Positions 12,830 to 31,208 of a DNA stretch of 64,000 bases are shown here, in pieces. The stretch lies in sequence record NC_025447.1. One strand, written 5' to 3'. The notes below the pieces were generated by a model. The model was not told the DNA's origin. It was given only the letters and a program-made list of their open reading frames with translations, and ran no database searches. Each line of letters opens with the position of its first letter. The first letter of the stretch is position 1. The translations under genes and the position numbers were made by a program.

Positions 12830-13160
12830 TAGCTAAAAACAAAATAATTGAAAATAATTTAACGCGTTTAAACGGCCCGTAAAGCCCTGGTTAGCTGGTG
12901 GCGGTGCAAATGTATAGCTTAGGTGTATTAATGCGTTAGAATGCGATTGAGGACGTTTTACGGGGTATAGTACTGATTCAGTACTGAATAGTAGTACTGA
13001 AAGATTGTTCTCCCTGGATTGTTCCAGTACTCCTATATAGAAAGAAAACTATTTTAAAAGTATTTGTAGAAAGTACTTGCAAAGTATTGGGAAAGGTGTA
13101 GAATGTTTTACATCGAGACGGGGGAAACGCTCCCGTTGCACTTTAAAAGAGATTAAAACG

Positions 13161-13523
13161 ATGGCGACTCAAATCAATACTATCATGCTTAACCTGGTTT
13201 CTTTCCGTGAAGAGATGAAAGATCTTCCCGCTGAGACTGTACGGATTCACATTGCAGCTTATCGGGAATTGATTGCAATGCTGCCGCTTAAGCGTGAACA
13301 GTATGCCGCTACTGCTATGCTCGATGCAATGATCCATAAGATGATCCAGACTGATTTAACGATGGCTTATCAGTACATGGGCGAAATGTTTGCAGTGTAT
13401 AGCAAGCCAGTACCAGGAATGGAAAGTACAGAAGTATTGCACGGCTTAAACTTAAAACAAGATGCATGGGATAATATGCCTCGTTTCCTGGTATGGGCTG
13501 ACAGTGGCAAGATTTACGAATAA
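13161..13523 (+). CDS. Early hypothetical protein
   Basis: Start corrected to MATQIN; own promoter cassette. Confidence 0.75.
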   Translation: MATQINTIMLNLVSFREEMKDLPAETVRIHIAAYRELIAMLPLKREQYAATAMLDAMIHKMIQTDLTMAYQYMGEMFAVYSKPVPGMESTEVLHGLNLKQDAWDNMPRFLVWADSGKIYE

Positions 13524-13617
13524 GTTTAATAAAGTACTTGCAAACTAAGTTTAAAAGCGTATAATGTTTTATATCAGGTGGGGAATAGTTCCCCACTATA
13601 ATAAAGAGGATTTAAAA

Positions 13618-13857
13618 ATGGCTAAATCAAAAATGTTCTTAGGACACAAAAACAAAACTCATTGGAATGTTTCCTTATGGATTAATAATGACGAATCATT
13701 ATACCGGTTGGCCCAGGACTTTATTGCCGCTAACACTAATCGTAATGATGCGGCCCGTCATATGATGCTATTTTTAGAACAGACTGGACAAGATAAAACT
13801 CCAGACGGCTTTAAGTATAGCACTACTGCGATCCGTGCGGCGATGGTTGGAATGTAA
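13618..13857 (+). CDS. Early hypothetical protein
   Basis: Start corrected to MAKSK after GAGGA; own cassette. Confidence 0.75.
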   Translation: MAKSKMFLGHKNKTHWNVSLWINNDESLYRLAQDFIAANTNRNDAARHMMLFLEQTGQDKTPDGFKYSTTAIRAAMVGM

Positions 13858-13940
13858 GAGAATAGATTAAAAGTACTATTGCACGGTGATAGTACTTTAT
13901 AATAAAGTTCTTTTTGTACAACAACGATAGGGGTAACAGC

Positions 13941-14207
13941 ATGACTATTACATATTTTGCAACGCGTGAACTTGCTCGGATTGCCGCACGCCAGGACGGG
14001 GCGACGTTTAAAGATATGGGCGTACAATCTGAACGTGGTAAACGTTGGGCCGTAGTAAAGCAAAGTACAGCCCGATCAATTCAGTACTGGCGAGCGGCTT
14101 TAAAGCGTCCTGATAGTGTATCGCGTCGCGTGGTAGAAATAAAGCACGACCGCAAGGGCAATCGCGTTACCGTGTACCGTACTAAAAAGATTGCAGTACT
14201 TGAATAA
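13941..14207 (+). CDS. Early hypothetical basic protein, paralog of 25998-26393
   Basis: FATRE..R..AR..G.TFKDMG....G.RWAV and HDRKGNRVTVY shared. Confidence 0.8.
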   Translation: MTITYFATRELARIAARQDGATFKDMGVQSERGKRWAVVKQSTARSIQYWRAALKRPDSVSRRVVEIKHDRKGNRVTVYRTKKIAVLE

Positions 14208-14294
14208 AAAGTACTTGCAAACTATGTTTAATGGCGTATAATGTTTTACATCGAGAGCGGGAACACTTCCCGCCTATAACCTGGAGTAATAAAA

Positions 14295-14525
14295 ATGACT
14301 AATATGTATATGACTGAAGTTAAAACCGTAAAAGATACTACCACGAATAAAACTACTTACTTACAGCGGATCTGCGGTGTATGGCAACGTATCAGCAAAT
14401 CAAAGTACTTTAAATTAACATCATATGCCAATCGTTCGGATTCATTCAGTACTGAAATAAAAGGTAATAAAGTACACCAATACGGCACTTATTATTATTA
14501 TAGCCTGGACGCGATTGCAGTATAA
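14295..14525 (+). CDS. Early hypothetical protein
   Basis: GGAG RBS, own cassette. Confidence 0.7.
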   Translation: MTNMYMTEVKTVKDTTTNKTTYLQRICGVWQRISKSKYFKLTSYANRSDSFSTEIKGNKVHQYGTYYYYSLDAIAV

Positions 14526-14555
14526 GTAGTTTACAAATCTTTACAATTGCCAGTA

Positions 14556-14635
14556 TTGACTTATTTTGTCAGTACTGGCATAATGTATCTATTGAAACGA
14601 ACAATTTGGCCCACGGGGTGCGGGAGTGTATCTAT
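14556..14635 (+). ncRNA. Gene-less promoter unit with two-hairpin motif (copy c)
   Basis: TTGACT-17-CATAAT then ATTG-AAACGAA-CAAT and GGCCCACGGGGTGCGGGAGTGTATCTAT. Confidence 0.5.
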
Positions 14636-14665
14636 AGAAAAAGTAGTTTATTACAGTTACAATTG

Positions 14666-14728
14666 TGCACCCGGTGGGTTAGCTGTTGTCATGGGGTATA
14701 TTATGCCAGTACTTGATAATGCTGTCAA
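14666..14728 (-). ncRNA. Gene-less promoter unit with motif (copy d), convergent with copy c
   Basis: TTGACA-17-CATAAT then CTAACCCACCGGGTGC. Confidence 0.5.
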
Positions 14729-14810
14729 TACTTTTTTTTTACTATTCAGTACTGAAAACTATTTTTAAAAAGTACTTGCAAACTATGTTTAAAGGCGTAT
14801 AATGTTTTAC

Positions 14811-14885
14811 ATCAGGACGGGGAATGAAATAAGTAACTCCCTGTTAAGTAGTCCAGGAGTAAGACATACGAAAACCTCCCCTGAT
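14811..14885 (+). ncRNA. Candidate three-way-junction RNA between tandem promoters (copy 1)
   Basis: ATCAGG/CCTGAT, ACGGGGA/TCCCTGT and GGAG/CTCC stems; near-identical copy at 24783-24855. Confidence 0.5.
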
Positions 14886-14953
14886 AAAATAGTTTGACAA
14901 AGATTTATAAAAGCGTATAATACTTACATCAACTACTGAATGAGGGTTACAAA

Positions 14954-15565
14954 ATGAAAACTATCACTACTACTACTTTCGTTATGGCTTTTTCTGAACT
15001 GAACGCAGAACAACAAACGGCGGCTATCGAACTGGTTCGGGATCGGGAACGTGCAAGTGAGGATAATTTCTTTGCTGAGTCAGTACTGGAATACTATAAA
15101 GAAACAGTACTACCAGAATACGGCATAGATGAAGCTGAATTGCAATACAGTGGTTTTTGGTCGCAAGGTGACGGTGCATCAATCAGTACTGACCACGTTG
15201 ACGCTGAGAAGTTTTTACGCAAGGTTAAGGCGTTAACGAAATATCGTTCCATCCGTCACCTGTTGAACGAAGATGATTTGGAAATGAGTGTAGAACGTTC
15301 CCAATCGCGTTATGCACACGAAAACACGGTAGGCGGTTGCGTTGATACTCGCTACACTGATTTAACTGTAAAACAGGCGGCGTTAGCTGAGGAACTGGAA
15401 AATTTACTGACTGACACGATCCGAGAATTATCTTGTAAGCTGTACCGTGATTTAGAAAATGCTTATGAAGACCAGTTTACTACTGAAAACATTGTAGGAC
15501 TGATTGAGGGTAACGAATATCAATTTAATGTTATCGATGGTGTAGTAGAATCTATCGCATATTAA
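14954..15565 (+). CDS. Early hypothetical acidic protein (YSGFWSQGDGA motif)
   Basis: 203 aa ORF, GAGG RBS, own promoter. Confidence 0.8.
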   Translation: MKTITTTTFVMAFSELNAEQQTAAIELVRDRERASEDNFFAESVLEYYKETVLPEYGIDEAELQYSGFWSQGDGASISTDHVDAEKFLRKVKALTKYRSIRHLLNEDDLEMSVERSQSRYAHENTVGGCVDTRYTDLTVKQAALAEELENLLTDTIRELSCKLYRDLENAYEDQFTTENIVGLIEGNEYQFNVIDGVVESIAY

Positions 15566-15623
15566 TTCAGTACTGAATCACTGGCGGGGAATGGTTCCCG
15601 CCTATATCCCAGGAGTAAGAGAA

Positions 15624-15860
15624 ATGATCGAACAAATCAAAACTACAACGCCAAACGTAACGGGTACAGTATCACACTTCATTGGTGACGATTCGCGGGG
15701 CGTTCCTTATTGTGCAGTACATGTAAACAAAAATGGCGACTACTGGCTAACGGTTTACGGTTCTTATTCTTTCGGGCGTAGTGCACACCAAAAGATCCTG
15801 GATAAAGTACAACCAACGGGTAAAAATATCACCGCTGAGATGTTTTATAAAAAGCACTAA
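15624..15860 (+). CDS. Early hypothetical protein
   Basis: Start corrected to MIEQIK after AGGAG. Confidence 0.7.
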   Translation: MIEQIKTTTPNVTGTVSHFIGDDSRGVPYCAVHVNKNGDYWLTVYGSYSFGRSAHQKILDKVQPTGKNITAEMFYKKH

Positions 15861-15945
15861 AAAGTACTTGCAAAGTAATTAGATTAACGTATAATACTTT
15901 ATATCGAGAGCGGGAATAGTTCCCGCCTTTACTGAGGATTATCTA

Positions 15946-16230
15946 ATGGGTAAAGTAATTAACTATACAGTACTAAGCAAGTCATTATCTATTAGCCAGT
16001 GCACCGATGGTTTTTGGCTGTACGATGAAACGCGTGGCATGAATTTAGCTATGCAGGAGAAAACTACTGATGCGGCATATCTTAAAGCACTGGAATACTA
16101 CCAGAAGCGTTTAAAGGAAGTAGAAAACGATTATAATAACCTGAAAGCGAAAGTAGATCATTTCGTCGGTCAATTCATTGACGATGACGAGGACGGGCAC
16201 TACTGCGACCGTTGCGGATCTTACAATTGA
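15946..16230 (+). CDS. Early hypothetical protein with C-terminal CxxC
   Basis: GAGGA RBS; HYCDRCG end. Confidence 0.75.
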   Translation: MGKVINYTVLSKSLSISQCTDGFWLYDETRGMNLAMQEKTTDAAYLKALEYYQKRLKEVENDYNNLKAKVDHFVGQFIDDDEDGHYCDRCGSYN

Positions 16231-16247
16231 GTACTGAGGATTATCTA

Positions 16248-16451
16248 ATGAGTGATTTAATTAAACGTATCAAAGAGCTTGAAGAAAAAGAATTGCAGTT
16301 GATCGGGTTACGGAATAAAGTATTCCATGATTTAGGTGGCTTCATTAATGCCTGGGATAGTGGCGATCCTGATGCGTTACCTGCTAACCGCCAGGCGATG
16401 ATCAATGATGTGCGTGGTGTCTTTGATTATGTTTTAAAGCAATTAAATTAA
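16248..16451 (+). CDS. Early hypothetical protein
   Basis: Start corrected to MSDLIK; same ACTGAGGATTATCTAATG start context as 15946. Confidence 0.75.
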   Translation: MSDLIKRIKELEEKELQLIGLRNKVFHDLGGFINAWDSGDPDALPANRQAMINDVRGVFDYVLKQLN

Positions 16452-16537
16452 AAAAGTACTTGCAATTAGTTTTCAGTACTGTATAATAGTTTACATCAAG
16501 GGGGAAATGGTTCTCCCCACTAATAAGGAGTTTTACA

Positions 16538-16759
16538 ATGGCTAATATCACTACTCTTTCCCAGCTTGAAGCACTGGTTAAATCTATGCGGGAACATGCC
16601 GACAATATCGGCGTAGAAGATCCGGCTGTATGTTTTTGCGACGAAATAAATGATGATACGCTCGTCATTGCAGAAGTACAAGACGTTTCTAACTATTCAT
16701 CGCGTTACACTGGCGGCGTAGCAAAGAAAGGTGATTTTTGTTTATATCTTACTAAGTAA
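16538..16759 (+). CDS. Early hypothetical protein
   Basis: TAAGGAG RBS, own cassette. Confidence 0.75.
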   Translation: MANITTLSQLEALVKSMREHADNIGVEDPAVCFCDEINDDTLVIAEVQDVSNYSSRYTGGVAKKGDFCLYLTK

Positions 16760-16766
16760 TAACCAG

Positions 16767-16792
16767 GGGGATCAAACGATCCCCTTTATTTT
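16767..16792 (+). terminator. Intrinsic terminator
   Basis: GGGGATC-AAAC-GATCCCC-TTTATTTT. Confidence 0.75.
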
Positions 16793-16823
16793 GCAGTACT
16801 GAATCATTTAATAGACGGATCTA

Positions 16824-16893
16824 TGCACCCTGTGGGTTAGTGACTATCTCGTCTTTATGTAGGTATTATGCCAGTACTGGATGCAGTTGTCAA
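16824..16893 (-). ncRNA. Gene-less promoter unit with two-hairpin motif (copy e)
   Basis: TTGACA-17-CATAAT then GAC-GAGATA-GTC-ACTAACCCACAGGGTGC. Confidence 0.5.
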
Positions 16894-17005
16894 GACTTTT
16901 TTTTCAAATACTTTTATATTAAAGTACTTGATAATAGTTTTTAAACGCGTATAATGTTTTACATCTAATCGGGAATACTCCCTAGTACTAACAAAGGATA
17001 TACAA

Positions 17006-17305
17006 ATGAAAACTGCAATCATCGCCCTGGCTTTATCTGTTTCCTCTTTCGCTGTTAACGCTTCCGTTGATGTACAGAAAGAAAAATTCATTCAGTGCAC
17101 TGTTGCAATGACTAACGAGGAAACGGCTGAGATCGTTACCAAATCCCTGGAACTGGCCCCTGCAATGTTTGCTAATGGCCCGTACCATGAAGAAGATGAT
17201 CAGGGTAGCACGACCATCTATTACGATGCAAAAAGTAAACGCGGTTCTGTCACTGTAATGGATACAGAGAAAGTTACATTCACTGGCGTAATTAATTGTT
17301 TATAA
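17006..17305 (+). CDS. Early protein with Sec signal peptide
   Basis: MKTAIIALALSVSSFAVNA cleavage-like N-terminus; AAGGA RBS. Confidence 0.75.
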   Translation: MKTAIIALALSVSSFAVNASVDVQKEKFIQCTVAMTNEETAEIVTKSLELAPAMFANGPYHEEDDQGSTTIYYDAKSKRGSVTVMDTEKVTFTGVINCL

Positions 17306-17322
17306 TATAGTACTGAATCACT

Positions 17323-17350
17323 AGCCCACTATAAGGAGTGGGCTTTTTTT
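17323..17350 (+). terminator. Intrinsic terminator
   Basis: AGCCCAC-loop-GTGGGCT-TTTTTT. Confidence 0.85.
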
Positions 17351-17543
17351 ATTGTAGGATTGTAGTACTGGTATACTTTGAAAATAGTTTTAAAAAAGTA
17401 GTTGACATTACCAGGGAAAAGCGTAGAATGTATTACATCAAGACGGGGAACATTAAGTAGACCGCCAGTAAGTCGAATGAAAAACTGGACACGTCAAACA
17501 AACTTTGATAAACTAACTTAAACTTTAATTGAGGATTTATAAA

Positions 17544-18026
17544 ATGGCTAATGTAAAATCATTTCTGAAAGCACTGATTTCTAACGATACTGTCATTGCT
17601 GCTGAATTGCTGGCTGACCTGGATAATGATACCATGAAAGCAGTACGCAACAATTTTAACATTGCTTACAGTGAAGCGAAAGAACTACAAGCCAAAAAGG
17701 TAGCAGAACTGGAAGAACAGAAAAAAGCCCGTGAAGCAGAACTGCAAGCAACAATAGAAAGTATTCAGGCGGCGGTGTCTGGTTTAGATCTGGAAGTGGT
17801 TATTGAAATGGCACATAAAGCCCTGGCGGTTAAGTACGGTGAAGATAAGCCGGAATCTAAGCCTAAAAAATGGATTCAAGAACGTGTTACGGTTGTCCTT
17901 GATAACGGGGAAGAACATTTGATTCCTGTACGCGGTAACTGCATTGCGGTAGTACTGGATGCTATCAAAGAAAGCGGTATGACTCGCGAGGAATGGATCG
18001 AATCTCACCGCAAAATTGAAGCATAA
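17544..18026 (+). CDS. H-NS/StpA-like protein with divergent DNA-binding motif
   Basis: Start corrected to MANVKS. Charged coiled-coil N-half; C-terminus VVLDNGEEHLIPVRGNCIAVVLDAIKESGMTREEWI aligns by eye with H-NS [36 protein letters not shown]. Confidence 0.6.
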   Translation: MANVKSFLKALISNDTVIAAELLADLDNDTMKAVRNNFNIAYSEAKELQAKKVAELEEQKKAREAELQATIESIQAAVSGLDLEVVIEMAHKALAVKYGEDKPESKPKKWIQERVTVVLDNGEEHLIPVRGNCIAVVLDAIKESGMTREEWIESHRKIEA

Positions 18027-18047
18027 CATTTAAAGTACTGAATCACT

Positions 18048-18073
18048 AGCCCACTTATACAGTGGGCTTTTTT
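18048..18073 (+). terminator. Intrinsic terminator
   Basis: AGCCCACT-TATAC-AGTGGGCT-TTTTT. Confidence 0.85.
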
Positions 18074-18300
18074 GTGTCTATAGTATTCCATGCCGTCAGC
18101 ACCTCATAGAATCGATTCTAACGCATTAAACTGATTATCTGATGCATCGCCCTAGCTGGTGGAGTTAAGGCCGTTAGAATGCGATTGAGAGCGTTTAAAG
18201 TATTTTGCAAAAAGTAATAAAAAGTACTTGCACGATTCAGAGATTAGCGTATAATGTTTTACATCAAGGCGAAACACCTTAACTAACTGAGGATATAAAG

Positions 18301-18453
18301 ATGAATACTTATGAACTGGATTGTTTCACGTTACAAGTAATGTCAGTATGCAGCAAGAAAGATTGGTCATCAAAGGAATTTAAAGCAGTTATTGCGTGTG
18401 CAAAACACGGCAAGACTATCAATGAAACGGCATCAATCATTGATAAACTTTAA
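18301..18453 (+). CDS. Small early protein (50 aa, not in track)
   Basis: GAGGA RBS, own promoter; MNTYELDCF...; resembles 22156-22299. Confidence 0.65.
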   Translation: MNTYELDCFTLQVMSVCSKKDWSSKEFKAVIACAKHGKTINETASIIDKL

Positions 18454-18522
18454 AAAATAGTTTGACAATAGTTTTAAGTACTGTATAATATTTTACATCA
18501 ACTACTGAGAAGGATTTAAAAA

Positions 18523-18750
18523 ATGGCTATCATCATCACTTACGTATCTGGCACTACTGGCACTTCTAGCACTGTTGCAGTACTGACCAACAAGAAAGGT
18601 GCGGAACTTCATTCTGCAATGAATACCTGGGCGGTGAATGAGTTCGGTCAGTGGGCTAGTGTAGAATACATTGAAACCTATCAAGTGCCGTCTATTAGCT
18701 TAACTGATTTAGGTGTAGATCGTATCCTTTGCCTGGATGAATTAAACTAA
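18523..18750 (+). CDS. Early hypothetical protein
   Basis: AAGGA RBS, own promoter. Confidence 0.75.
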   Translation: MAIIITYVSGTTGTSSTVAVLTNKKGAELHSAMNTWAVNEFGQWASVEYIETYQVPSISLTDLGVDRILCLDELN

Positions 18751-18835
18751 AAAGTACTTGCAAAGTAAATCGGATAAAGTATAATACATTACATCAAGGG
18801 GAGAAATGATTCTCCCCACTAAGAGGAAACTAAAA

Positions 18836-18979
18836 ATGAAAACTTGTCAATGTGGTAAAAAATCTATCACTGGTTTGAAACGGGGCGTTGCTCTTTGTCA
18901 GTATCACTATAACGCTCAAGTATGGGGTAAAGAGTGGGCAGACCAGGTGGAAGCTGTAAAGAAAGCAAAAAGTAAGTAA
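18836..18979 (+). CDS. Small early Cys-containing protein (47 aa, not in track)
   Basis: GAGGA RBS, own cassette; MKTCQCGKK...LCQYH. Confidence 0.65.
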   Translation: MKTCQCGKKSITGLKRGVALCQYHYNAQVWGKEWADQVEAVKKAKSK

Positions 18980-19060
18980 AATTATTATCACAGTACTATT
19001 GACATAGTTTGATAGTACTGGCATAATAGATTTTATCAAGACAACTAAGAGGAAACAATA

Positions 19061-19273
19061 ATGGCTATCATTACTAAAATCAAAGTTAACAAATCACTGG
19101 TTAAACTTGAACAAGTGAAAGCAGGTTATAAAGTATCGTGGTGCGGTATGTATCGGATGTTCACCGATATAGACAATGCAATCAAGTACTACACTGACAC
19201 CGTTGCCTCATTCGTTCGTTCTGATGTAGTACTGGCAGTACATGCACATAAAGCAGCGAAAGAAAGTAAGTAA
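19061..19273 (+). CDS. Early hypothetical protein, similar to 21877-22056
   Basis: GAGGA RBS; MAII start and Y.VS.....(F/Y)...D.A...Y pattern shared. Confidence 0.75.
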   Translation: MAIITKIKVNKSLVKLEQVKAGYKVSWCGMYRMFTDIDNAIKYYTDTVASFVRSDVVLAVHAHKAAKESK

Positions 19274-19364
19274 AAATATTATCACAGTACTATTGATATA
19301 GTTTGATAGTACTGGCATAATAGATTTTATCAAGACAACACATATTAATTTAAGGAATACTAAA

Positions 19365-19688
19365 ATGGCTAAAACTATCATCAACACCGTTTCCCTGGCT
19401 GCAATCCGTGCAATCAATGTTGACGGTAAACGTTGGACTGATTCATATGGCAATACTTATCATTCTTGTCATGTAAGCGTCGAACTGGATAACGGTTTGA
19501 ATGATCTGGCGGTTGAATCATTTACTTATGGCTATGAAGATGCATATCAACAAACGGCGTTATCTCTCTTAAAGGAATCAGTAGACGGGCTTAATACTGA
19601 TGAAACCTCCCTTACTCGTTTGTGCAATGATCTTAATATCCCGTTGCATTGTACTGTACAGAATGTTAAACGCAAAAAAGATCTTTAA
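19365..19688 (+). CDS. Early hypothetical protein, paralog of 25575-25898
   Basis: RWTDS(Y/H)GNTYHSC, FTYGY and VKRKKD shared. Confidence 0.8.
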   Translation: MAKTIINTVSLAAIRAINVDGKRWTDSYGNTYHSCHVSVELDNGLNDLAVESFTYGYEDAYQQTALSLLKESVDGLNTDETSLTRLCNDLNIPLHCTVQNVKRKKDL

Positions 19689-19768
19689 TTAGCTTTACTT
19701 TATGCAGATACTTTTATATAGTGTCTGCATAGGGGAAAGAAATTAAATTAACTTAAGAGGATCGTATA

Positions 19769-20038
19769 ATGAAAAATATCAGTACTTTAATCGATGCAGG
19801 TACACATGTTCGTCGGTCAATGGTTGCAACCAGTACTACAAAACAAGTAGCAAGCGGTTATCTTGTATTTGTACACGAAGGAAAGCTATTGGAACGTTCA
19901 ATCAATTTTGATGTTAAAAACAATTGCCGTTTTATTATTTTTAAGCGTGAACAATATAAAATTGATTTGCCAGCAAAGCCCATAAGCGGGGCGTACAACG
20001 TGCAATCATTGTTTGAGCGTCAACCATACACCTATTAA
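19769..20038 (+). CDS. Early hypothetical protein
   Basis: GAGGA RBS. Confidence 0.7.
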   Translation: MKNISTLIDAGTHVRRSMVATSTTKQVASGYLVFVHEGKLLERSINFDVKNNCRFIIFKREQYKIDLPAKPISGAYNVQSLFERQPYTY

Positions 20039-20089
20039 TCAAAACATCGTTAGCGGTCGATTTAGGCCGCTTATATTGGGGATTATACC

Positions 20090-24175: not shown

Positions 24176-24194
24176 TATATAAGGAGTACAGCTT

Positions 24195-24287
24195 ATGCAA
24201 ATGAATCCGATGATTGTTGTGTTAGCTGTACTTATGATCATTCATGCCATCGTAGAAGTACTAACACAATCAGGAGTAATACAATGA
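24195..24287 (+). CDS. 30 aa hydrophobic peptide
   Basis: AAGGAG RBS; MIVVLAVLMIIHAIVEVL. Confidence 0.55.
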   Translation: MQMNPMIVVLAVLMIIHAIVEVLTQSGVIQ

Positions 24288-24454
24288 TCCAAGTAGAATT
24301 ATCAGTACTGAAAGATCTGTTTTATCGGTTAGGCACTACTGGCGAATACCCTAAAGGGGATACTGCTAAACTATACATTGCATTGGATGTATGGCAACGT
24401 AATGAACTGGCTAACGCCTGGCGTAAAGGTAAATCAGAGGGGATTGCAGCATGA
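24284..24454 (+). CDS. Small hypothetical protein (56 aa)
   Basis: AGGAG RBS, ATGA overlap. Confidence 0.6.
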   Translation: MIQVELSVLKDLFYRLGTTGEYPKGDTAKLYIALDVWQRNELANAWRKGKSEGIAA

Positions 24455-24600
24455 AAGAATTTTTATTCGAAGTAGTGTTCCAGGGCGTAGGAAGTAACCA
24501 ACTGATTCGATCAAGTGGTTACAATGTTAACCAGGCATGGAATAACATTAAACAAATGTACCCGAACGCTATCACATATCGCAACCCAAAACAAGTTTAA
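24451..24600 (+). CDS. Small hypothetical protein (49 aa)
   Basis: GAGG RBS, ATGA overlap. Confidence 0.55.
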   Translation: MKEFLFEVVFQGVGSNQLIRSSGYNVNQAWNNIKQMYPNAITYRNPKQV

Positions 24601-24609
24601 AAAGAATAA

Positions 24610-24700
24610 AAAAAGGGATTGACTCCGGTCAGTCCCTTTGCTATTATATACGCATAGACAAAAACTAGCCCACAGGGTGCATAAATGTATCTATTATATG
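24610..24700 (+). ncRNA. Terminator-overlapped promoter plus motif (copy h)
   Basis: AAAGGGATTGAC-TCCG-GTCAGTCCCTTT; TTGACT-17-TATTAT; CTAGCCCACAGGGTGC. Confidence 0.5.
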
Positions 24701-24782
24701 CTGGTGGCTAGTACTATCAAGTACTGAAAACTATTTTTAAAAAGTACTTGCATTGTACTTAGAATCAAGTATAATGTTTTAC

Positions 24783-24855
24783 ATCAGGACGGGGAACGAA
24801 ACAAGTAACCCCGTTAAGTAGTCCAGGAGTAAGACATACGAAAACCTCCCCTGAT
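24783..24855 (+). ncRNA. Candidate three-way-junction RNA (copy 2)
   Basis: Near-identical to 14811-14885; variable arm keeps ACGGGG/CCCCGT pairing. Confidence 0.5.
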
Positions 24856-24921
24856 AAAATAGTTTGACAATAGAAATTAAACAAGTATAATACTTACATC
24901 AACCACAAAGAGGAATACAAA

Positions 24922-25122
24922 ATGAAACATTTTACTTTCGGTGTAGTAGGCTTTACAGTATCCAGCGGCGTTTATAAATCAGAACGCGGTGCTAAAAATG
25001 CAGCAAGTCGGGCGTATGGTTCACAGCGTGACTTACAGGTCGGTTATATTAGTAACATTAATAACATGTTTATTCCTGTTTCACAGCGTAAAGCGGGTAA
25101 CATGAAATGGGAAACAATTTGA
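24922..25122 (+). CDS. Early hypothetical protein
   Basis: GAGGA RBS, own promoter. Confidence 0.75.
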   Translation: MKHFTFGVVGFTVSSGVYKSERGAKNAASRAYGSQRDLQVGYISNINNMFIPVSQRKAGNMKWETI

Positions 25123-25211
25123 TAAAATAGTTTGACAATAGTTTTTAGTACTGTATAATATTTTACATCAAGTGGGGAATAGTTCCCCACCTAACAAAGA
25201 GAGAAATTAAA

Positions 25212-25487
25212 ATGCGGATTCTACTGACAGCTAACGAAATCGAGCAAGTACTGACTACTAACCTGGAAGACTGGAAACGTGATGCAGATATCCAGGCGGT
25301 GCAATGGCTCAATGATAAGTTAACGCCGGATGATTTAAGTAAGATTGTAGATCCACAATTCTATGAAGATATTCACGACACGGCTTTAAGCGTCGAGGAT
25401 GTACTTGATAAGCACTACATTGATATTGATTTGCAGGTTTACGGTCGTAAAAACTTTATCACTATTCACGACATTTATAATAATTAA
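25212..25487 (+). CDS. Early hypothetical acidic protein
   Basis: Own cassette. Confidence 0.7.
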   Translation: MRILLTANEIEQVLTTNLEDWKRDADIQAVQWLNDKLTPDDLSKIVDPQFYEDIHDTALSVEDVLDKHYIDIDLQVYGRKNFITIHDIYNN

Positions 25488-25574
25488 GTATTGACAAAGT
25501 ATCTTAGTACTGTATAATAGTTTACATCAAGGCAGGGGAATGGTTCCCCTCCTAACTAAAAGAGAGAAATTAAA

Positions 25575-25898
25575 ATGACTATGATCCTTACCCAGAAAGT
25601 AGAAATGAAAATTGTAACTTCCTTTGACATTAAAGTCAATCGGTGGACTGATAGCCACGGCAATACTTACCACTCATGCTACGTGTCTGCATTGATTGGT
25701 GACCGCTGGGAAGACCTGGGACATGAAACCTTTACTTACGGTTACGGTACACAAGGCGAATACACGGGCTTGGAGATCATTAAAGAAACTGTAATAGGTT
25801 TCAACCCGAAAGAGAAAGTACTACACAGAATTGAGGATGAGATCAACAAAGAAATTACAGTTCGTTACTACGATGTAAAACGTAAGAAAGATATGTAA
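25575..25898 (+). CDS. Early hypothetical protein, paralog of 19365-19688
   Basis: WTDSHGNTYHSC motif. Confidence 0.8.
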   Translation: MTMILTQKVEMKIVTSFDIKVNRWTDSHGNTYHSCYVSALIGDRWEDLGHETFTYGYGTQGEYTGLEIIKETVIGFNPKEKVLHRIEDEINKEITVRYYDVKRKKDM

Positions 25899-25997
25899 TA
25901 GAATCCATTTAAAGTACTATTTGACATTGCCCAGATAGTACTTTATAATAGACTCTAACTTGTAGTACTAATTAACTTAACTAATAGGATGTACACC

Positions 25998-26393
25998 ATG
26001 ATTACTAAATTCTTCGCTACCCGTGAACAAGCTCGCATCGTTGCCCGTGAAGAAGGTGAAACATTTAAAGACATGGGCAAAGATGCACCGAAAGGACAAC
26101 GCTGGGCGGTACAGTTCAAAGAGATCTCTGATATTGTGAATTCACCTGAGCCTGTACTTACAGCAGCAGAACTAAAGCAAGCTCAAGAACTGGCTGAAGT
26201 ACTGAACGCTCAAGATGACTTTTTGAAAGGTTCTGATATTGAAGTTACAGTTAACGCAAATGCATGGACTCACGCGGATCACCTGGCAAACCTTAAGCGT
26301 CCAAGTGAACTGATTCGTAACCAGAAAGAGATCCGTCATGACCGTAAAGGAAACCGTGTAACAGTATACAGTAAACGCCGCCAGGTTATCTAA
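25998..26393 (+). CDS. Early protein, paralog of 13941-14207 with a longer middle segment
   Basis: Shared N- and C-terminal blocks; same palindromic AAAGTACTAT..ATAGTACTTT promoter type. Confidence 0.8.
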   Translation: MITKFFATREQARIVAREEGETFKDMGKDAPKGQRWAVQFKEISDIVNSPEPVLTAAELKQAQELAEVLNAQDDFLKGSDIEVTVNANAWTHADHLANLKRPSELIRNQKEIRHDRKGNRVTVYSKRRQVI

Positions 26394-26416
26394 TAACTTT
26401 GCAGTACTAACAACAC

Positions 26417-26441
26417 GGCGGGAATATTTCCCGCCTTTTTT
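26417..26441 (+). terminator. Intrinsic terminator built from the same hairpin as cassette leaders
   Basis: GGCGGGAA-TAT-TTCCCGCC-TTTTTT. Confidence 0.8.
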
Positions 26442-26455
26442 ATAGGATAAACAAA

Positions 26456-26710
26456 ATGATTAAGGTTCAACTATCAAACGATAATGTATTACGGGTACAC
26501 TATAAAGCTCCACAGAGAATCATCACAAAGGCCGTACAGCTTGCTAATGAGTTTATTAATGGTAGTCTATTGCCTAGGAAGTTAAGCAACGGGAAACTAC
26601 GTGTAATCGACGTAGACACTAACAATAGAATAGTGATCGAGAGTACTGGAAAAATTAATCTATATGAACACCAACAATACAATAAAAAAATAAAACTAAT
26701 ATCACGTTGA
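26456..26710 (+). CDS. Hypothetical protein
   Basis: AGGA RBS. Confidence 0.65.
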   Translation: MIKVQLSNDNVLRVHYKAPQRIITKAVQLANEFINGSLLPRKLSNGKLRVIDVDTNNRIVIESTGKINLYEHQQYNKKIKLISR

Positions 26711-26763
26711 CAGTACTCAAATGTTTTAGTATTATGTATCTATACCAACACAGGAGAAACAAA

Positions 26764-26982
26764 ATGAAATTATCTAAAATCGAAAAGAAAACTATTGATG
26801 AAGCAGTGAAGCACGGTTATACCTTTCGTAATGATTCACACTTCACCAGTTTTCAACAGGGAAACCGTACCATCAAAAAACTCATTGATAAAGGTTTACT
26901 CACTAAGGTTGATAACGGGAACGGTGTAGAATATCAACCGACAGAAGACGCATTATCACTAAAGAAATATTCTATTATCTAA
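26764..26982 (+). CDS. Early hypothetical protein
   Basis: Start corrected after AGGAG; promoter block 26707-26766 duplicated at 26983-27042. Confidence 0.7.
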   Translation: MKLSKIEKKTIDEAVKHGYTFRNDSHFTSFQQGNRTIKKLIDKGLLTKVDNGNGVEYQPTEDALSLKKYSII

Positions 26983-27039
26983 TTGACAGTACTCAAATGT
27001 TTTAGTACTATGTACGCATACCAACACGGGGAAAACAAA

Positions 27040-27282
27040 ATGATTACTTTAGAAAAACGTATCAAAGAGACTACAACGCTGGTGGAACTGTTAACCGTTC
27101 TTAAATGCCGGGTAACTCCATTCAGTACACCGGACTTTATCAACATGGTGGACGTTAACGGTCGCTATCGTATTGCGGTCGAACAAGGTACGGCAAAAGT
27201 ATTCAGTACTAAAAATACGCGTGAAGTATTCCACGCAGTTCAAGTAAAAAAAGTAGTTGCCATTGATAGTAAAGTACTGTAA
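27040..27282 (+). CDS. Early hypothetical protein
   Basis: Start corrected; duplicated promoter block upstream. Confidence 0.7.
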   Translation: MITLEKRIKETTTLVELLTVLKCRVTPFSTPDFINMVDVNGRYRIAVEQGTAKVFSTKNTREVFHAVQVKKVVAIDSKVL

Positions 27283-27313
27283 TATAGTTTCATTAACTCA
27301 AGGAGTCAACACA

Positions 27314-27898
27314 ATGCGTAACTATACTAAATTCATCCGTTCACTTCATGCAATGGAAACCAACAAAGAGATCCTTTCAGCTTGTCGGTTAGCTGGACTG
27401 GAGATCGTCGGTGCGGGTTCTTCCCGTATTGTATTCGCTTTAAATGATCGGTTAGTGATTAAGGTCGCGAATTGTGATGCGGGTGTAGAACAAAATGAAA
27501 CTGAATGTAAGGTATGGAATTTTTTAGATTATGACCGTCCGCACCTTAAACAGTTCTTTGCCAAGGTGCATATGCATTTATGCGATCCTGATAATCTGCT
27601 TATTGTTATGGATCGTTTGAGTACTGCAAGCAAAGGCAGTGTAAAGCACGTAACCGCATGTAATGAGTTAAAGTACAATATTAAACGTAACACTATTGAA
27701 CGCCATCACCATTTCGCTGATGCTCTCAATCACGTTGATGATACATTATCCACACTAACGATAAGAGATATCAGAAAACAGAATATCGGCCAGGATCGCA
27801 ACGGCTTGATTAAAGTACTTGATTACGGTTTAACCCGCAATATCTGGAATCAGTACTATAAAAAACGTGATGTTAACGCGATAACTATAACACGATAA
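27314..27898 (+). CDS. Protein-kinase-like (PKL/APH fold) enzyme
   Basis: Gly loop GAGSSRIV, VIK lysine, QNETE helix C, catalytic RDIRKQN, metal-binding DYG; AAGGAG RBS. Confidence 0.75.
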   Translation: MRNYTKFIRSLHAMETNKEILSACRLAGLEIVGAGSSRIVFALNDRLVIKVANCDAGVEQNETECKVWNFLDYDRPHLKQFFAKVHMHLCDPDNLLIVMDRLSTASKGSVKHVTACNELKYNIKRNTIERHHHFADALNHVDDTLSTLTIRDIRKQNIGQDRNGLIKVLDYGLTRNIWNQYYKKRDVNAITITR

Positions 27899-27907
27899 AA
27901 AAGATTA

Positions 27908-28000
27908 AAAAAGGGATTGACTCCAGTCAGTCCCTTTGCTATTATATATTCATTGAGAGATAACTCACTGACCCATAGGGTGCGGAAGTGTATCTATTAT
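27908..28000 (+). ncRNA. Terminator-overlapped promoter plus two-hairpin motif (copy i)
   Basis: AAAGGGATTGAC-TCCA-GTCAGTCCCTTT; TGAG-AGATAA-CTCA; CTGACCCATAGGGTGC. Confidence 0.5.
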
Positions 28001-28122
28001 ATAAGTATTCAGTACTGAAAACTATTTTATAAAAAGTACTTGCAAACTATCTCAATGAGCGTATAATGTTTTATATCGAGAGGGGGAAATGGTTCTCCCT
28101 GGTACTAAAAGGAATCAAGACG

Positions 28123-28344
28123 ATGGCTACTATGACCTGCGTTCACGCTTCAAATCTTCTGAATGATGCAGCATTTAAAGCAGGTGAAGAATATCAATGC
28201 TATCGGGATGAAAATAAAAAAGTTTTCGTCGTTGATGCTAACGGTTTCCATATTGAATTGCAATCCGGTTTCACTGGCATTGATGGTAAATCTGTATGGG
28301 GCGTCCAGGACGATAACGGCACATATCATTTTAAACGTAATTAA
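28123..28344 (+). CDS. Early hypothetical protein
   Basis: Start corrected to MATMTC after AAGGA. Confidence 0.7.
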   Translation: MATMTCVHASNLLNDAAFKAGEEYQCYRDENKKVFVVDANGFHIELQSGFTGIDGKSVWGVQDDNGTYHFKRN

Positions 28345-28428
28345 GTATTGACAAAGTATATCAGTACTGTATAATAGTTTACATCAAGGGGAGAATAGTT
28401 CTCCCCACCAATAAAAGGAAACAAAATT

Positions 28429-28701
28429 ATGTCCAGCTACTCCGCTACTATGATTATTAAAGATATGAACGGTAATCCTACTTCTGCTGGTGGATCATTT
28501 GGTAACATTAATTTAGATGGGCGGTTATCAATTGAATCAGCCATCAATGCAGCGAAAGAAGTTTTTAAGAATGAATGTACTGTAAGCAAGCTGGATTATA
28601 TGGGCTTCGCTATCGAGAAAACTAATCGTTTTGTGGACTACAAAAAACCACTGATGATTGATACTAACCTGAAAGCAAACGAAGTGGAATACTTATTATG
28701 A
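28429..28701 (+). CDS. Early hypothetical protein
   Basis: Own cassette, AAGGA RBS. Confidence 0.75.
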   Translation: MSSYSATMIIKDMNGNPTSAGGSFGNINLDGRLSIESAINAAKEVFKNECTVSKLDYMGFAIEKTNRFVDYKKPLMIDTNLKANEVEYLL

Positions 28702-28889
28702 CAGTAGAAGAAGTTAAAAAAGTACTGGCAGTACTACGCTATCATAATCATTGTAAGGTGAAGAATGATCCTGATTATCTTGATTCATCGCTGGAAGAGG
28801 ATACACTACAAGCAATAAGCCATATGCAAAAAATGCTTAAGCGTATGACCGAAAAGAACAGGCCGGACTATATCGGAAATAAAATTTAA
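28698..28889 (+). CDS. Hypothetical protein
   Basis: ATGA overlap. Confidence 0.65.
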   Translation: MTVEEVKKVLAVLRYHNHCKVKNDPDYLDSSLEEDTLQAISHMQKMLKRMTEKNRPDYIGNKI

Positions 28890-28972
28890 AAAGTACTTGC
28901 ATTGTAAGTAAAACAAAGTATAATGTTTTACATAGGGGGAGATATCCTCCCCCACTAATAAGGAGTACTAAA

Positions 28973-29197
28973 ATGGCTAACTTTGATGAACTGATGCGGG
29001 AAGTAGCTACCCTGGCAGAAGAGAAGAAATCATTTGATTCTATCTATAACACCGCTTACAGTGATTCAGTACTGGCATGTACTCAGGATCAAAAAGATGA
29101 ACTGATCGCCACCTATCATGAAGCATGGAAGTATTACCGCCAATGGGAGAAAGAAGAAAGCGAGTCTACCATCAACGGCATCAATAATCTAATCTAA
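28973..29197 (+). CDS. Early hypothetical protein
   Basis: TAAGGAG RBS, own cassette. Confidence 0.75.
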   Translation: MANFDELMREVATLAEEKKSFDSIYNTAYSDSVLACTQDQKDELIATYHEAWKYYRQWEKEESESTINGINNLI

Positions 29198-29271
29198 AGT
29201 TTTATTTCAGTACTATTGACAATGCGTGATAGTACTGATGTGATAACTTTACTAACTAAAGGGGAAACATA

Positions 29272-29529
29272 ATGGAACAGTTCACACAATATCGGGTAAA
29301 TCCTCAAGCTATGGCCTACGTAGAAGACCATAAAACGTTACCAGTACTAACACCAATTAAAGGCCATATCTATCGTGCTATGCAGTGGAATAACGCCTAT
29401 AATGGCTATAAAGCGGTATCCGCTGCAATGTACTTAGGGGATGGCGAATGGTTTGATCCAAATAATCCTGGTGCACTCGATAGTACTGAAAAAATGACAT
29501 GGGCCGACTATATCGAAGATATCTCATAA
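29272..29529 (+). CDS. Hypothetical protein
   Basis: GGGGA RBS. Confidence 0.7.
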   Translation: MEQFTQYRVNPQAMAYVEDHKTLPVLTPIKGHIYRAMQWNNAYNGYKAVSAAMYLGDGEWFDPNNPGALDSTEKMTWADYIEDIS

Positions 29530-29617
29530 AAACTATTTGACAGTACTACAAGATAATGTATAATGTTTTACATAGAGCGGGGGAATAGTTCTCCCGCACC
29601 TTTAGGAGTAAAACATT

Positions 29618-29818
29618 ATGTCAATCGCTAACGAATTGGTTGCAGTACTGAATGAAGCAAAAGCCAACTGCATCGATGTACAGATCAAAGAGCTTGGCAA
29701 TGGCTTGATCGGCTGTACTTGTACAGTGCAAACGGCTACCGATTATCGGGAAGTGGAATCACTCGAATCACTGGTACGGTATATTAAAATCCTGGTAGAA
29801 GATTGGAGAATCATCTAA
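29618..29818 (+). CDS. Early hypothetical protein
   Basis: AGGAG RBS, own cassette. Confidence 0.7.
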   Translation: MSIANELVAVLNEAKANCIDVQIKELGNGLIGCTCTVQTATDYREVESLESLVRYIKILVEDWRII

Positions 29819-29831
29819 CAAAAAAGAATAA

Positions 29832-29915
29832 AAAAAGGGATTGACTCCGGTCAGTCCCTTTGCTATTATATACGCATAGACAAAAACTAGCCCACTGGGT
29901 GCAGAGAAGTATCTG
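29832..29915 (+). ncRNA. Terminator-overlapped promoter plus motif (copy j)
   Basis: Near-identical to copy h; CTAGCCCACTGGGTGC. Confidence 0.5.
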
Positions 29916-30074
29916 TAAGATAGTTAATAACGGTGAGTAACTATCTGCTGGTGGATGTAATTCCAGTACTCAAAACTATTTCAAAAAAGTATTGACAAAG
30001 TATAGCAGTACTGAGATAATGTATCTCGTAGGGCGGCAATAGTGCAGCCCACCTCCAAAAGAGCGAGATATAAA

Positions 30075-30290
30075 ATGGCGTTAACCAAACAAGAAATTAT
30101 CGACCGTATCAAAGAGTCAACTGGCTGGTATGTTGGGGACCGTTTAATTGTTAAAGTTCTCGATTATTCAAATAATCCTCTTGCACCGGAACCAGTGGCA
30201 TACAAATTATCCTGGATATCTGCGTTTAGCGGTAAGCGTGAAAGATGTGTGTACTATCCGAACACCGTCGGGCTACAGTTCTGTAAATAA
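30075..30290 (+). CDS. Early hypothetical protein
   Basis: Start corrected; promoter block duplicated at 30309. Confidence 0.65.
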   Translation: MALTKQEIIDRIKESTGWYVGDRLIVKVLDYSNNPLAPEPVAYKLSWISAFSGKRERCVYYPNTVGLQFCK

Positions 30291-30390
30291 ATTTTAATAG
30301 AAAAAGTATTGACAAAGTATATCAGTACTGCAATAATGTATCTCGTAGGGCGGCAATGGTGCGACGGCCCACAAAGTTAGGAGATTCAAA

Positions 30391-30717
30391 ATGAGTACTT
30401 CAATCGCTATCGTTAAAGCTTTCATCCGTACCAATTTCGACCGCATTACTGTTGATGGTAATGATCGGGAAGTAGAATACTCTTTCATTGTTGCACAAAC
30501 CGCAAACGGTGCACGCTATATCTTAAATGACAGTGAAGCTAACCACTACTTCTATAATAAAGGATTACACTACATCCCTAGCGAAGTAGTCTACACTAAG
30601 ATGAATAAGCTGGTAGACAAGATTAACGCTAAAGGTACTATCGATTTACAGTACTGGAGCGAAACCGAACCAGAATACGGATCACATCGTTACCTGAATC
30701 CAGGAATTAAAATGTAA
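30391..30717 (+). CDS. Early hypothetical protein
   Basis: AGGAG RBS. Confidence 0.75.
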   Translation: MSTSIAIVKAFIRTNFDRITVDGNDREVEYSFIVAQTANGARYILNDSEANHYFYNKGLHYIPSEVVYTKMNKLVDKINAKGTIDLQYWSETEPEYGSHRYLNPGIKM

Positions 30718-30806
30718 AAAGTACTTGCATTGTACTTAGAATCAAGTATAATGTTTTACATAGAGAGGGGGAAATGGTTCTCCCTCCTAAATTAAGGAGT
30801 TTTATC

Positions 30807-31208
30807 ATGACCTTCTCAATCACTTCCTTCGCTGACGTTTTAGTACTGGCTCGGACTTTTGGTAAAGATGCACTGGAGTACGCTGTAAGTAATGGCACTC
30901 TCCAACCGGAACAATGCCGCATCATTGGAAACTGTAAACGTTGGGCGGTATCCAATACTATTGCACTAGAAAACTTCAACGATGGTAACAATGAGTATTC
31001 AGTTGATGCAGTATTCGAAGCCGTTGATCTTGGCGGTATCTATAACACTAACCTAAATGATGTGCGTATCGTTCGCACGGGGTTCGGTGCTTATGATGTA
31101 TCTATCCGTGAAGCTATGAACACCGGATACATTAGTAAGGACTTACTTGCTCACATCATGCAGCTATGGACGGAACGTAACGAAGCACGCACTATCTTAG
31201 GACTATAA
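30807..31208 (+). CDS. Early hypothetical protein
   Basis: Start corrected to MTFSITS after TAAGGAG. Confidence 0.75.
   Translation: MTFSITSFADVLVLARTFGKDALEYAVSNGTLQPEQCRIIGNCKRWAVSNTIALENFNDGNNEYSVDAVFEAVDLGGIYNTNLNDVRIVRTGFGAYDVSIREAMNTGYISKDLLAHIMQLWTERNEARTILGL

Follow-up and report, generated by a model that had tools for sequence, protein, structure and literature searches.

The stretch of 64,000 nucleotides from record NC_025447.1 considered here (the window, whose numbering is used throughout unless genome positions are specified) comes from Escherichia phage 121Q, an Asteriusvirus with a genome of 348,532 bp. Between 13046 and 31208 it holds an array of genes, many of them preceded by a strong promoter and, directly behind the promoter, a sequence that would fold into a hairpin in the 5' leader of the message; these promoter-leader units, and the gene cassettes that they precede, are the subject of this report. 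The region is 100% identical to genome positions 137046-155208 and contains genes 266-317, all on the + strand and nearly all annotated as 'hypothetical'; the counts below refer to 51 genes. Most of the products are ORFans; in addition, there are a DksA/TraR zinc finger (gp294, by Pfam), a GNAT protein (gp295, according to the record annotation) and a weakly kinase-like protein, and the PHROGs matches of the array proteins are to families of unknown function only. No tRNAs were found in the region, and an Rfam search of 11000-33000 at a permissive threshold gave only three sub-threshold chance hits, one of them merely a terminator.

Where in the phage genome does this array lie? All of it falls within the direct terminal repeat (DTR):

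11458..31638, + strand: direct terminal repeat of 121Q, about 20.2 kb, present as one collapsed copy in the record

The left end is given by five relatives whose records start at the physical end of the genome, base 1 of each aligning to position 11458. The junction is seen in JP4, where the record carries the repeat twice and 31638 is followed directly by 11458 at the concatemer joint. The record of vB_Ec-M-J annotates its bases 1-21,525 as 'Direct Terminal Repeats', and a DTR of 20,993 bp was determined for fEgEco12 by PhageTerm and confirmed with restriction digests (PMC13070987). As judged from these alignments, 11458-31638 is the DTR of 121Q. The array is probably the first-injected early region of the phage and its genes are probably an immediate-early, host-takeover set; the early timing is one that we infer. 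The encoded proteins fit an accessory host-takeover set, a compatibility that is not proof.

The + strand of the DTR contains 21 sigma-70 promoters that match at least 11 of the 12 consensus positions, 13 of them perfectly, against an expectation of 0.56 +/- 0.81 in Markov-1 random sequence. The whole genome has 32 perfect promoters, and the DTR, which holds those 13, makes up 5.8% of it. By looser criteria there are about 40 promoters in the DTR, with an A-rich tract upstream of the -35 box. A repeat search recovered a promoter-plus-leader unit of 66 nt in 20 in-register copies, composed of the A-rich tract, AGTACT fused to TTGCAA or TTGACA, a 16-nt spacer, TATAAT, TTTACAT and the G-rich arm of the hairpin; two more promoter subfamilies have 13-14 and 7-8 copies. 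When promoter and G/C hairpin are sought together under strict settings on the + strand of the whole genome, 16 of the 22 hits lie inside the DTR. The original prediction had placed the full motif before more than 30 genes. The unit is real and lies where it had been placed, but in its full form (promoter, ACAT, hairpin and Shine-Dalgarno (SD) sequence) it precedes only 22 of the 51 genes, two with weak and two with variant hairpins, plus 3 gene-less or long-leader units. The units, together with two related leaders (gp277 and gp272), are as follows.

13065..13160, + strand: gp266 unit, promoter and leader hairpin
13526..13617, + strand: gp267 unit, promoter and leader hairpin, stem GTGGGGAA/TTCCCCAC
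14203..14294, + strand: gp269 unit, promoter and leader hairpin, stem GCGGGAA/TTCCCGC
15566..15623, + strand: gp272, hairpin and SD without any promoter; the cassette is located elsewhere in relatives
15856..15945, + strand: gp273 unit, promoter and leader hairpin
16448..16537, + strand: gp275 unit, promoter and leader hairpin, stem with G·U and one mismatch
16916..17005, + strand: gp276 unit, promoter and weak hairpin
17390..17543, + strand: gp277, promoter with a structured leader of 108 nt
18216..18300, + strand: gp278 unit, promoter and weak hairpin; cassette only in 121Q and fEgEco12
18746..18835, + strand: gp280 unit, promoter and leader hairpin; cassette missing in four of eight relatives (JP4, CRJP21, E9.1, TH47)
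20450..20538, + strand: gp286 unit, promoter and leader hairpin
21046..21138, + strand: gp288 unit, promoter and leader hairpin
21480..21572, + strand: gp289 unit, 12/12 promoter and leader hairpin
23601..23688, + strand: gp296 unit, promoter and leader hairpin
23874..23962, + strand: gp297 unit, 12/12 promoter and leader hairpin
25120..25211, + strand: gp302 unit, 12/12 promoter and leader hairpin
25479..25574, + strand: gp303 unit, 12/12 promoter and leader hairpin
28028..28122, + strand: gp309 unit, promoter and leader hairpin
28336..28428, + strand: gp310 unit, 12/12 promoter and leader hairpin
28885..28972, + strand: gp312 unit, promoter and leader hairpin, stem GGGGGAG/CTCCCCC
29525..29617, + strand: gp314 unit, 12/12 promoter and leader hairpin; cassette missing in BF17 and TH47
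29984..30074, + strand: gp315 unit, promoter and variant hairpin; 94% identical to the gp316 unit over 62 nt
30301..30390, + strand: gp316 unit, promoter and variant hairpin
30713..30806, + strand: gp317 unit, promoter and leader hairpin; the promoter is a near-exact copy of that at 24737

The remaining genes are served differently. Four promoters (those of gp271, gp279, gp295 and gp301) share the start region and have no hairpin, about 10 promoters are of other types, and about 15 of the 51 genes have no promoter of their own. About 10 intrinsic terminators split the array and most cassettes have no terminator between them; true terminators are found at 16765, 17323, 18048, 26417 and in the type-D units described below. 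One of them is built from a leader stem family:

26417..26435, + strand: intrinsic terminator, stem GGCGGGAA/TTCCCGCC followed by TTTTTT

Because there are only about 10 terminators, the array is better described as a series of multi-promoter blocks with overlapping transcripts than as one insulated unit per gene, and the idea of one promoter for each gene is overstated. Two candidates, P268 and P313, are doubtful as promoters on direct reading, the former having a spacer of 13 nt and the latter a poor -10 box. A further perfect promoter, outside the DTR at genome position 107532, has a hairpin of this design behind it, with the offset unchanged and a stem of 8 bp (GGGGATGA / TCATCCCT).

The hexamer AGTACT is a feature of the genome at large. 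It occurs 903 times against 118 expected, and CAGTACTG occurs 194 times against 3.4. AGTACT is by far the most over-represented palindromic hexamer, and eight others (e.g., CCATGG, CAGCTG, AGGCCT, and AGCGCT) are absent. It is densest in the DTR, with 117 copies, 49 of them within genes, and in many promoters it is both fused to the -35 box and placed directly before the -10 box, the two copies being about 22 bp apart.

What kind of structure follows the promoter? In nearly all units the stem begins at the 13th base after the -10 hexamer and consists of 8-9 bp, with folding energies of -12 to -16 kcal/mol and z-scores of -1.6 to -3.5 (nine of ten below -2). The SD sequence and the AUG are unpaired in every minimum-free-energy structure, and the leaders that have no hairpin are unstructured. 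Transcription would start at the A of the conserved CAT, the 8th base after the -10 box, which leaves 4-5 unpaired nt before the stem. The hairpins are followed by an ACTAA-like sequence with no U-tract, and a terminator scan called none of them; a role as intrinsic terminator was rejected for want of the U-tract.

Evidence that the hairpin is kept as a structure comes from its base pairs, which were counted outward from the loop in 81 distinct copies from 121Q and six relatives. The pairs at position 4 are G-C in 42 copies, A-U in 24 and G·U in 15; position 6 has 71 G-C and 9 C-G, position 7 has 57 G-C, 13 A-U and 6 U-A, and position 8 has 36 G-C, 21 A-U and 4 C-G. In an ungapped alignment of 23 columns, comprising the 42 copies whose loop is 3 nt long, both sides have changed in five of nine pairs, with 34 double-changed cells against 11.6 +/- 3.3 in shuffled data, a value reached in none of 500 shuffles. 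The same alignment gives a covariation score of 0.418, compared with at most 0.18 for slid partners. Selection of the copies required six contiguous pairs, and many of them are orthologous or paralogous to one another, so the number of independent events is smaller than the number of cells. Whole-leader MAFFT alignments broke up the 5' arm with gaps and could not be used to count pairs; loop-anchored counting and the ungapped alignment took their place.

The wobble pairs also reveal which strand carries the fold. G·T combinations with the G on the 5' arm number 35 and the reverse T·G only 3; on the opposite strand, the former would be A·C mismatches. This asymmetry assigns the fold to the sense strand, and thus to RNA, and makes a symmetric protein site in duplex DNA unlikely. 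Within the genus the core GGGRA...TYCCC is nearly invariant, the 5' flank ACAT is conserved and ACTAA is a frequent 3' flank.

A comparison across genera separates structure from sequence. Klebsiella phage K64-1 belongs to another genus (protein identity is 37% for gp277), and its terminal repeat is built in the same way. Behind 9 of 38 K64-1 promoters, against 5.7% of control positions, a hairpin of 7-10 bp stands at the same offset, its stem being quite different in sequence; the corresponding figures for 121Q are 16 of 41 promoters and 6.1%. That place and pairing are kept without sequence is the best evidence for selection on the 5'-proximal structure itself.

How has the array changed among related phages? 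The DTR of 121Q was compared with those of eight Asteriusvirus relatives using chained blastn alignments, in which indels and replacements of at least 40 bp were counted. Among 40 distinct events, 18 are bounded by direct repeats of at least 12 bp (12-103 bp), 13 of these by repeats of 43-103 bp, and the flanking repeats are the promoter-leader units. Of 71 breakpoints, 44 fall in units, which cover 24.3% of the DNA (binomial p ~2e-11). Cassette gain and loss with breakpoints in the repeats is what the original prediction had anticipated. It had also named identical cassette order without breakpoint enrichment in the repeats as the outcome that would speak against it; since the order is not identical and the breakpoints are enriched in repeats, it passes its own test.

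Near-exact blocks recur within 121Q at 18973/19267/21779 (75-93% over 105 nt), 29984/30301 (94%), 26685/26961 (81%) and 24737/30714, and all four sets named beforehand were recovered by the repeat search. The most similar repeat pairs are exactly those that bound the polymorphic or unique cassettes of gp281, gp306, and gp315, and they coincide with near-identical blocks that the original prediction had pointed out. The gp281 cassette, missing in two relatives, is bounded by a repeat of 77 bp, and the gp306 cassette is missing in E9.1 and TH47 with an overlap of 61 bp at the junction:

26685..27039, + strand: gp306 cassette between 81%-identical promoter blocks of 83 nt

The gp315 cassette is unique to 121Q among the nine genomes; the repeat of 68 bp that flanks it is present as a single copy in all eight relatives, and no homolog of gp315 was found in any of the nine loci.

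The reverse case, in which relatives have an extra cassette between two copies of a unit that is single in 121Q, is equally well represented. The segment 25479-25581 (the gp303 unit and the first 7 nt of the gene) aligns on both sides of an extra gene of 60 codons in six relatives. Two copies of the gp267 unit flank an extra cassette in relatives, with an overlap of 80 bp. Overlaps at the gp276 unit (45 bp, 16920-16964, seven relatives), the gp286 unit (54-72 bp, five relatives), the gp310 unit (99 bp, three relatives) and the gp312 unit (43-67 bp, seven relatives) likewise flank extra cassettes, and the gp288 unit borders an extra gene in relatives on both sides. The gp272 cassette has been transposed: it stands before gp273 in 121Q and after the gp275 homolog in relatives.

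In total, about 15 of the 51 genes are polymorphic within the genus, as sampled by the eight relatives, and the relatives hold at least a dozen cassettes that 121Q does not have. Gene order is largely collinear within the genus. K64-1 has homologs for 20 of the genes, in an order that is scrambled on the left and in the middle, whereas the right part is collinear. Subtypes of promoter and of hairpin are combined in various ways (the GTGGGGAA stem, for example, stands behind both TTGCAA..GCG and TTGACA..AGTACTG promoters), and four units (gp290, gp296, gp302, and gp309) resemble promoter swaps. These comparisons support the view that related phages have gained, lost, duplicated, and moved cassettes of promoter, leader, and gene, with junctions that lie in the repeated promoter and leader sequence.

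How might the parts work together? Host RNA polymerase with sigma-70 would read some 40 promoters, many at or near consensus, with an A-rich upstream tract and with AGTACT at fixed positions, and transcripts from successive promoters would overlap within the blocks set by about 10 terminators. Twenty-two messages would begin at the A of the conserved CAT with 4-5 unpaired bases, continue into a G/C-rich hairpin of 8-9 bp, and then present an A-rich single strand in which the SD sequence and start codon are left open. The hairpin, as an obstacle close to the 5' end, would protect the short early messages against decay by RNase E and RppH, which depends on that end; in read-through transcripts it might also halt 3' exonucleases behind the upstream gene. 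Since the units of ~70-100 bp are repeated in direct orientation, they could recombine homologously, so that cassettes would be deleted, duplicated, inserted, or moved while their neighbours stay intact.

The leaders of ompA and T7 gene 10 are known 5' stabilisers, in which a short single strand is followed by a stable hairpin and an open A-rich ribosome site. In the current view, RNase E scans from the 5' end and is blocked by obstacles (PMC11194081); work on 5' stem-loop stabilisers is referenced in PMC3997798. By analogy, we take stabilisation as the most likely role of the hairpin; homologous recombination between units, in turn, is a mechanism suggested by the flanking repeats. The reading as a whole, namely an immediate-early array in the DTR with sigma-70 promoters, 5'-stabilising leader hairpins, and recombining cassettes, is one that we favour with some reserve. 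Its firm ground is the location in the DTR, the promoter excess, the covariation and strand asymmetry of the hairpin, the conservation of the design in another genus, and the repeat-flanked indels.

Several observations weigh against this reading. A hairpin is absent from four promoters that share the start region and from about 10 others. In the classic ompA experiments, 4-5 unpaired nt are said to have been the upper limit of protection, and this is the length predicted here. The hairpin before gp272, which has no promoter, and the terminator with a U-tract at 26417 indicate that a role at the 5' end is not the sole possibility. The public RNA runs in which relatives of this DNA occur are Logan contigs of metatranscriptomes and one probable DNA run, in which transcript starts, ends, and strand are not visible; contig joints at promoters and hairpins, with sides of 21-65 nt and 85% likeness, are most likely ambiguous repeat mappings and were not counted as evidence. 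As to recombination, 76% of the intergenic DNA consists of units, and of 49 breakpoints that are intergenic or in a unit, 44 lie in units, so that the enrichment of breakpoints is largely what purifying selection against gene disruption would be expected to give. Orthologous units are as conserved as coding DNA (0.907 compared with 0.904), and in 23 of 27 cases they are closer to each other than to any paralog.

Are the cassettes, then, prone to recombination at all? The repeats could simply reflect common descent and the need for promoters, with illegitimate indels filtered to intergenic positions. This account gains from the intergenic placement that explains most of the breakpoint enrichment, from unit conservation at the level of coding DNA with no general homogenisation, from the largely collinear order within the genus, and from the existence of indels with no flanking repeat (e.g., 23877, 18265/18510, and 24906/25206). 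It does not readily accommodate the 13 distinct indels that are bounded by direct repeats of 43-103 bp, nor the fact that the most similar repeat pairs flank the gp281, gp306, and gp315 cassettes, and we regard it as unlikely, if deserving of serious attention. The flanking repeats are a stronger argument than the breakpoint enrichment. Ongoing gene conversion among units was rejected because orthologs are closer than paralogs in those 23 of 27 cases; a cassette is thus normally inherited whole, and exchange is occasional and not constantly homogenising.

The hairpin might have a meaning other than stability. One idea is that it serves as a class tag on the messages of the first-injected DTR, recognised by one phage or host factor that would decide when the set as a whole is selectively translated, protected, or later destroyed; along with AGTACT it would form a two-layer code, in DNA and RNA, specific to Rak2-like jumbo phages. 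We put this forward tentatively and think it rather unlikely. A narrower proposal, which seems doubtful to us, is that the hairpin is an RNA operator for a phage protein (a translational repressor or an endonuclease, comparable to T4 RegA/RegB or the MS2 coat protein) that switches the DTR genes off, or on, at a set time, stabilisation being secondary. Sequence is indeed constrained as well as structure (the GGGRA...TYCCC core and the ACAT and ACTAA flanks), only one class of genes, defined by timing or by position, has the hairpin, and the 5' arm of the stem contains GGAG, the target word of RegB. K64-1, however, keeps the position of the stem and not its sequence, and several unrelated stem families occur in one genome, for which a generic structural role is a better fit than one specific binding protein. 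Pfam models of RegA and RegB had no match in 121Q; the control genomes were unmatched too, so this search is uninformative.

A further possibility is that the hairpins are intercistronic barriers at the 3' ends, or processing points, of read-through transcripts, and that the fixed distance from the promoter is a legacy of copying. No terminator separates most cassettes (about 10 for 51 genes), the hairpin before gp272 has no promoter, and one stem family, with a U-tract, serves as the terminator at 26417. Against this, the unrelated hairpins of K64-1 keep the offset from the -10 box, which argues for selection on how far the stem lies from the start; the hairpin could play both roles, and we consider it improbable that the 3' barrier is the primary one. 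That the inverted repeat acts in DNA, as the site of a dimeric repressor that blocks the early promoters or as a target of site-specific recombination of the kind that the authors describing PeSL elements in T4-type phages speculated about for GGGG...CCCC motifs (PMC2839356), is very hard to credit: the palindromic repeat lies a short way downstream of the start, in a suitable place for a roadblock, and several junctions are near the hairpin, but the compensatory changes preserve pairing and not sequence, 35 G·T against 3 T·G make for asymmetric half-sites in duplex DNA, and the metagenome contig joints are ambiguous repeat mappings.

With stabilising leaders on recombining cassettes as the preferred reading, how does the array compare with known systems? 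PeSL cassettes have been described in the T4-type phages RB49/phi1, T4/PST, and KVP40/nt-1 (PMC2839356, PMC4122927). In RB49 and phi1 the element comprises, in this order, a stem-loop with demonstrated terminator activity, an AT-rich tract, and an early promoter; indels and mini-circles arise by recombination between elements (PMC2839356, PMC4122927). Both systems have early promoters that are strong, sigma-70-like and preceded by an AT-rich tract, a stem-loop of a G-run and a C-run in each repeated intergenic unit, clusters of small ORFans, and indels or replacements between close relatives with junctions in the repeated units. The anatomy differs, since the stem-loop of a PeSL lies upstream of the promoter and terminates, whereas the 121Q hairpin belongs to the 5' leader, where it begins 13 nt behind the -10 box, and lacks a U-tract. 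The setting also differs: PeSLs are found in hyperplastic regions of T4-type genomes and the 121Q array in the terminal repeat of a jumbo phage that is not T4-type. The only PeSL-matching layout in the array is that of the four type-D units. The 121Q array thus appears to act like PeSLs at the DNA level but is not a member of the PeSL family. The description of the array as PeSL-like mobile cassettes holds for the repeat-bounded indels and not for the anatomy; what the earlier interpretation chiefly claimed about evolution was right, its anatomical detail was wrong, and the terminal repeat, which it had missed, is the essential context.

Among phages closer to 121Q, the Rak2-like phage CBB has RpoD-type promoters clustered among short hypothetical genes; three of these promoters lie on its terminal repeat of 22 kb, and the genes were proposed to be early ones (PMC5259590). 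CBB and 121Q share a long DTR that is dense with small early genes under many strong host-type promoters, although the CBB paper gives promoters only and no leader hairpin (PMC5259590). A literature search found no paper describing a leader hairpin or cassette shuffling in Rak2-like phages. With the leaders of ompA, papA, and T7 gene 10 the 121Q units share a short G/C-rich hairpin near the 5' end and, after it, an A/U-rich stretch with an unoccluded strong SD; they differ in that more than 20 genes of a single region have the design, within a recombining DNA repeat, and that the stem is preceded by a predicted 4-5 unpaired nt. Host-takeover modules with many small early genes and strong host-type promoters are also found in terminal redundancies in Bacillus phage SPO1 and in the pre-early region of T5. 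The 121Q array would thus combine known kinds of element, i.e., a terminal-repeat early module, PeSL-like shuffling, and 5' leader hairpins, and its mechanism is plausible.

Many Rak2-like jumbo phages are now being isolated for use in therapy. Over 80% of their genes lack an assigned function, and their early programme is not known to have been described. About 50 ORFans can now be placed in the DTR, the part of the genome that is likely to act first, with a testable map of promoters and leaders. The gene set of the DTR appears to turn over by cassette exchange at shared regulatory repeats, which extends the PeSL idea beyond T4-type phages to a layout of promoter, leader hairpin, and gene. 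The polymorphic cassettes are an obvious place to look for host-range and anti-defence functions. A compact portable leader, with a consensus promoter, a 5' hairpin, and an open ribosome site, could also serve as an expression part.

The array contains units of other types, several of them with no gene behind the promoter.

18973..19060, + strand: type-C promoter unit of gp281, with a CATAAT -10 box and no hairpin; further copies at 19267, 21779, 22064, and 22587
20918..21040, + strand: type-D unit, with the -35 box inside a terminator-like stem-loop of 12 bp and a short conserved RNA element behind it
24612, 27910, and 29834: further copies of the type-D unit
14764..14890, + strand: gene-less unit sA, promoter and start of the hairpin units followed by a structured RNA of ~75 nt
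24736..24860, + strand: gene-less unit sB, a second copy of the sA RNA unit

The original prediction had suggested that the gene-less units might be empty or RNA-only cassettes. For sA and sB, the second description fits better. The ~75-nt sequence is present in two copies, at ~92% identity, in all eight Asteriusvirus relatives, and its core is kept in K64-1. In the consensus fold the predicted 5' end, AUCAGG, pairs with CCUGAU at the 3' side, just before the next promoter, so that the terminal helix closes exactly at the predicted +1, an indirect sign in favour of that start, and one pair shows a compensatory change in four sequences. The two units are best read as small-RNA cassettes, that is, as putative conserved non-coding transcription units and not as empty ones.

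A second family of gene-less units occurs at 20918-21040, 24612-24720, 27910-28030, and 29834-29960, and also at 14555-14735, 16800-16900, 22605-22700, and 12523-12807. Its members consist of a promoter, often inside a 12-bp terminator-like stem, the core CCCAC(A/G)GGGTGC, and then GTATCTAT. They are found in both orientations, the minus-strand promoters at 14728 and 16893 making convergent pairs, and K64-1 has seven similar units. The annotated genes gp270 (14583-14768) and gp293 (22786-22932) overlap gene-less RNA units and may not be genes. In the type-C promoters (18979-19033, 19273-19327, and 21785-21839), a 9-bp inverted repeat, CAGTACTAT ... ATAGTACTG, extends across the -35 box and the spacer and looks like an operator for a dimeric DNA-binding protein.

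Some observations concern individual genes. Three pairs of scattered paralogs had been proposed. Two stand, namely 13941/25998 (gp268/gp304, 36% identity) and 19365/25575 (gp282/gp303, 38% identity); the third, 19061/21877 (gp281/gp290), was rejected, as the two have only the upstream promoter-leader block in common and not the protein. The annotated start codons of gp315 (30042-30290) and gp317 (30774-31208) fall within the leader hairpin, and better starts are the ATGs at 30075 and 30807, respectively, each of which is preceded by an SD sequence. The product of gp308 (194 aa, 27314-27898) has a sub-threshold Pfam match to protein kinase domains (E 5e-4) and a homolog annotated as a Ser/Thr kinase in one relative; gp308 may thus be a kinase that modifies the host early on.

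The left 1.6 kb of the DTR (11458-13046) has no annotated gene. It contains a perfect + strand promoter at 11822, three strong minus-strand promoters at 12829, 12629, and 12488, and long inverted repeats made of CAGTACTG, and the GC skew changes sign here.

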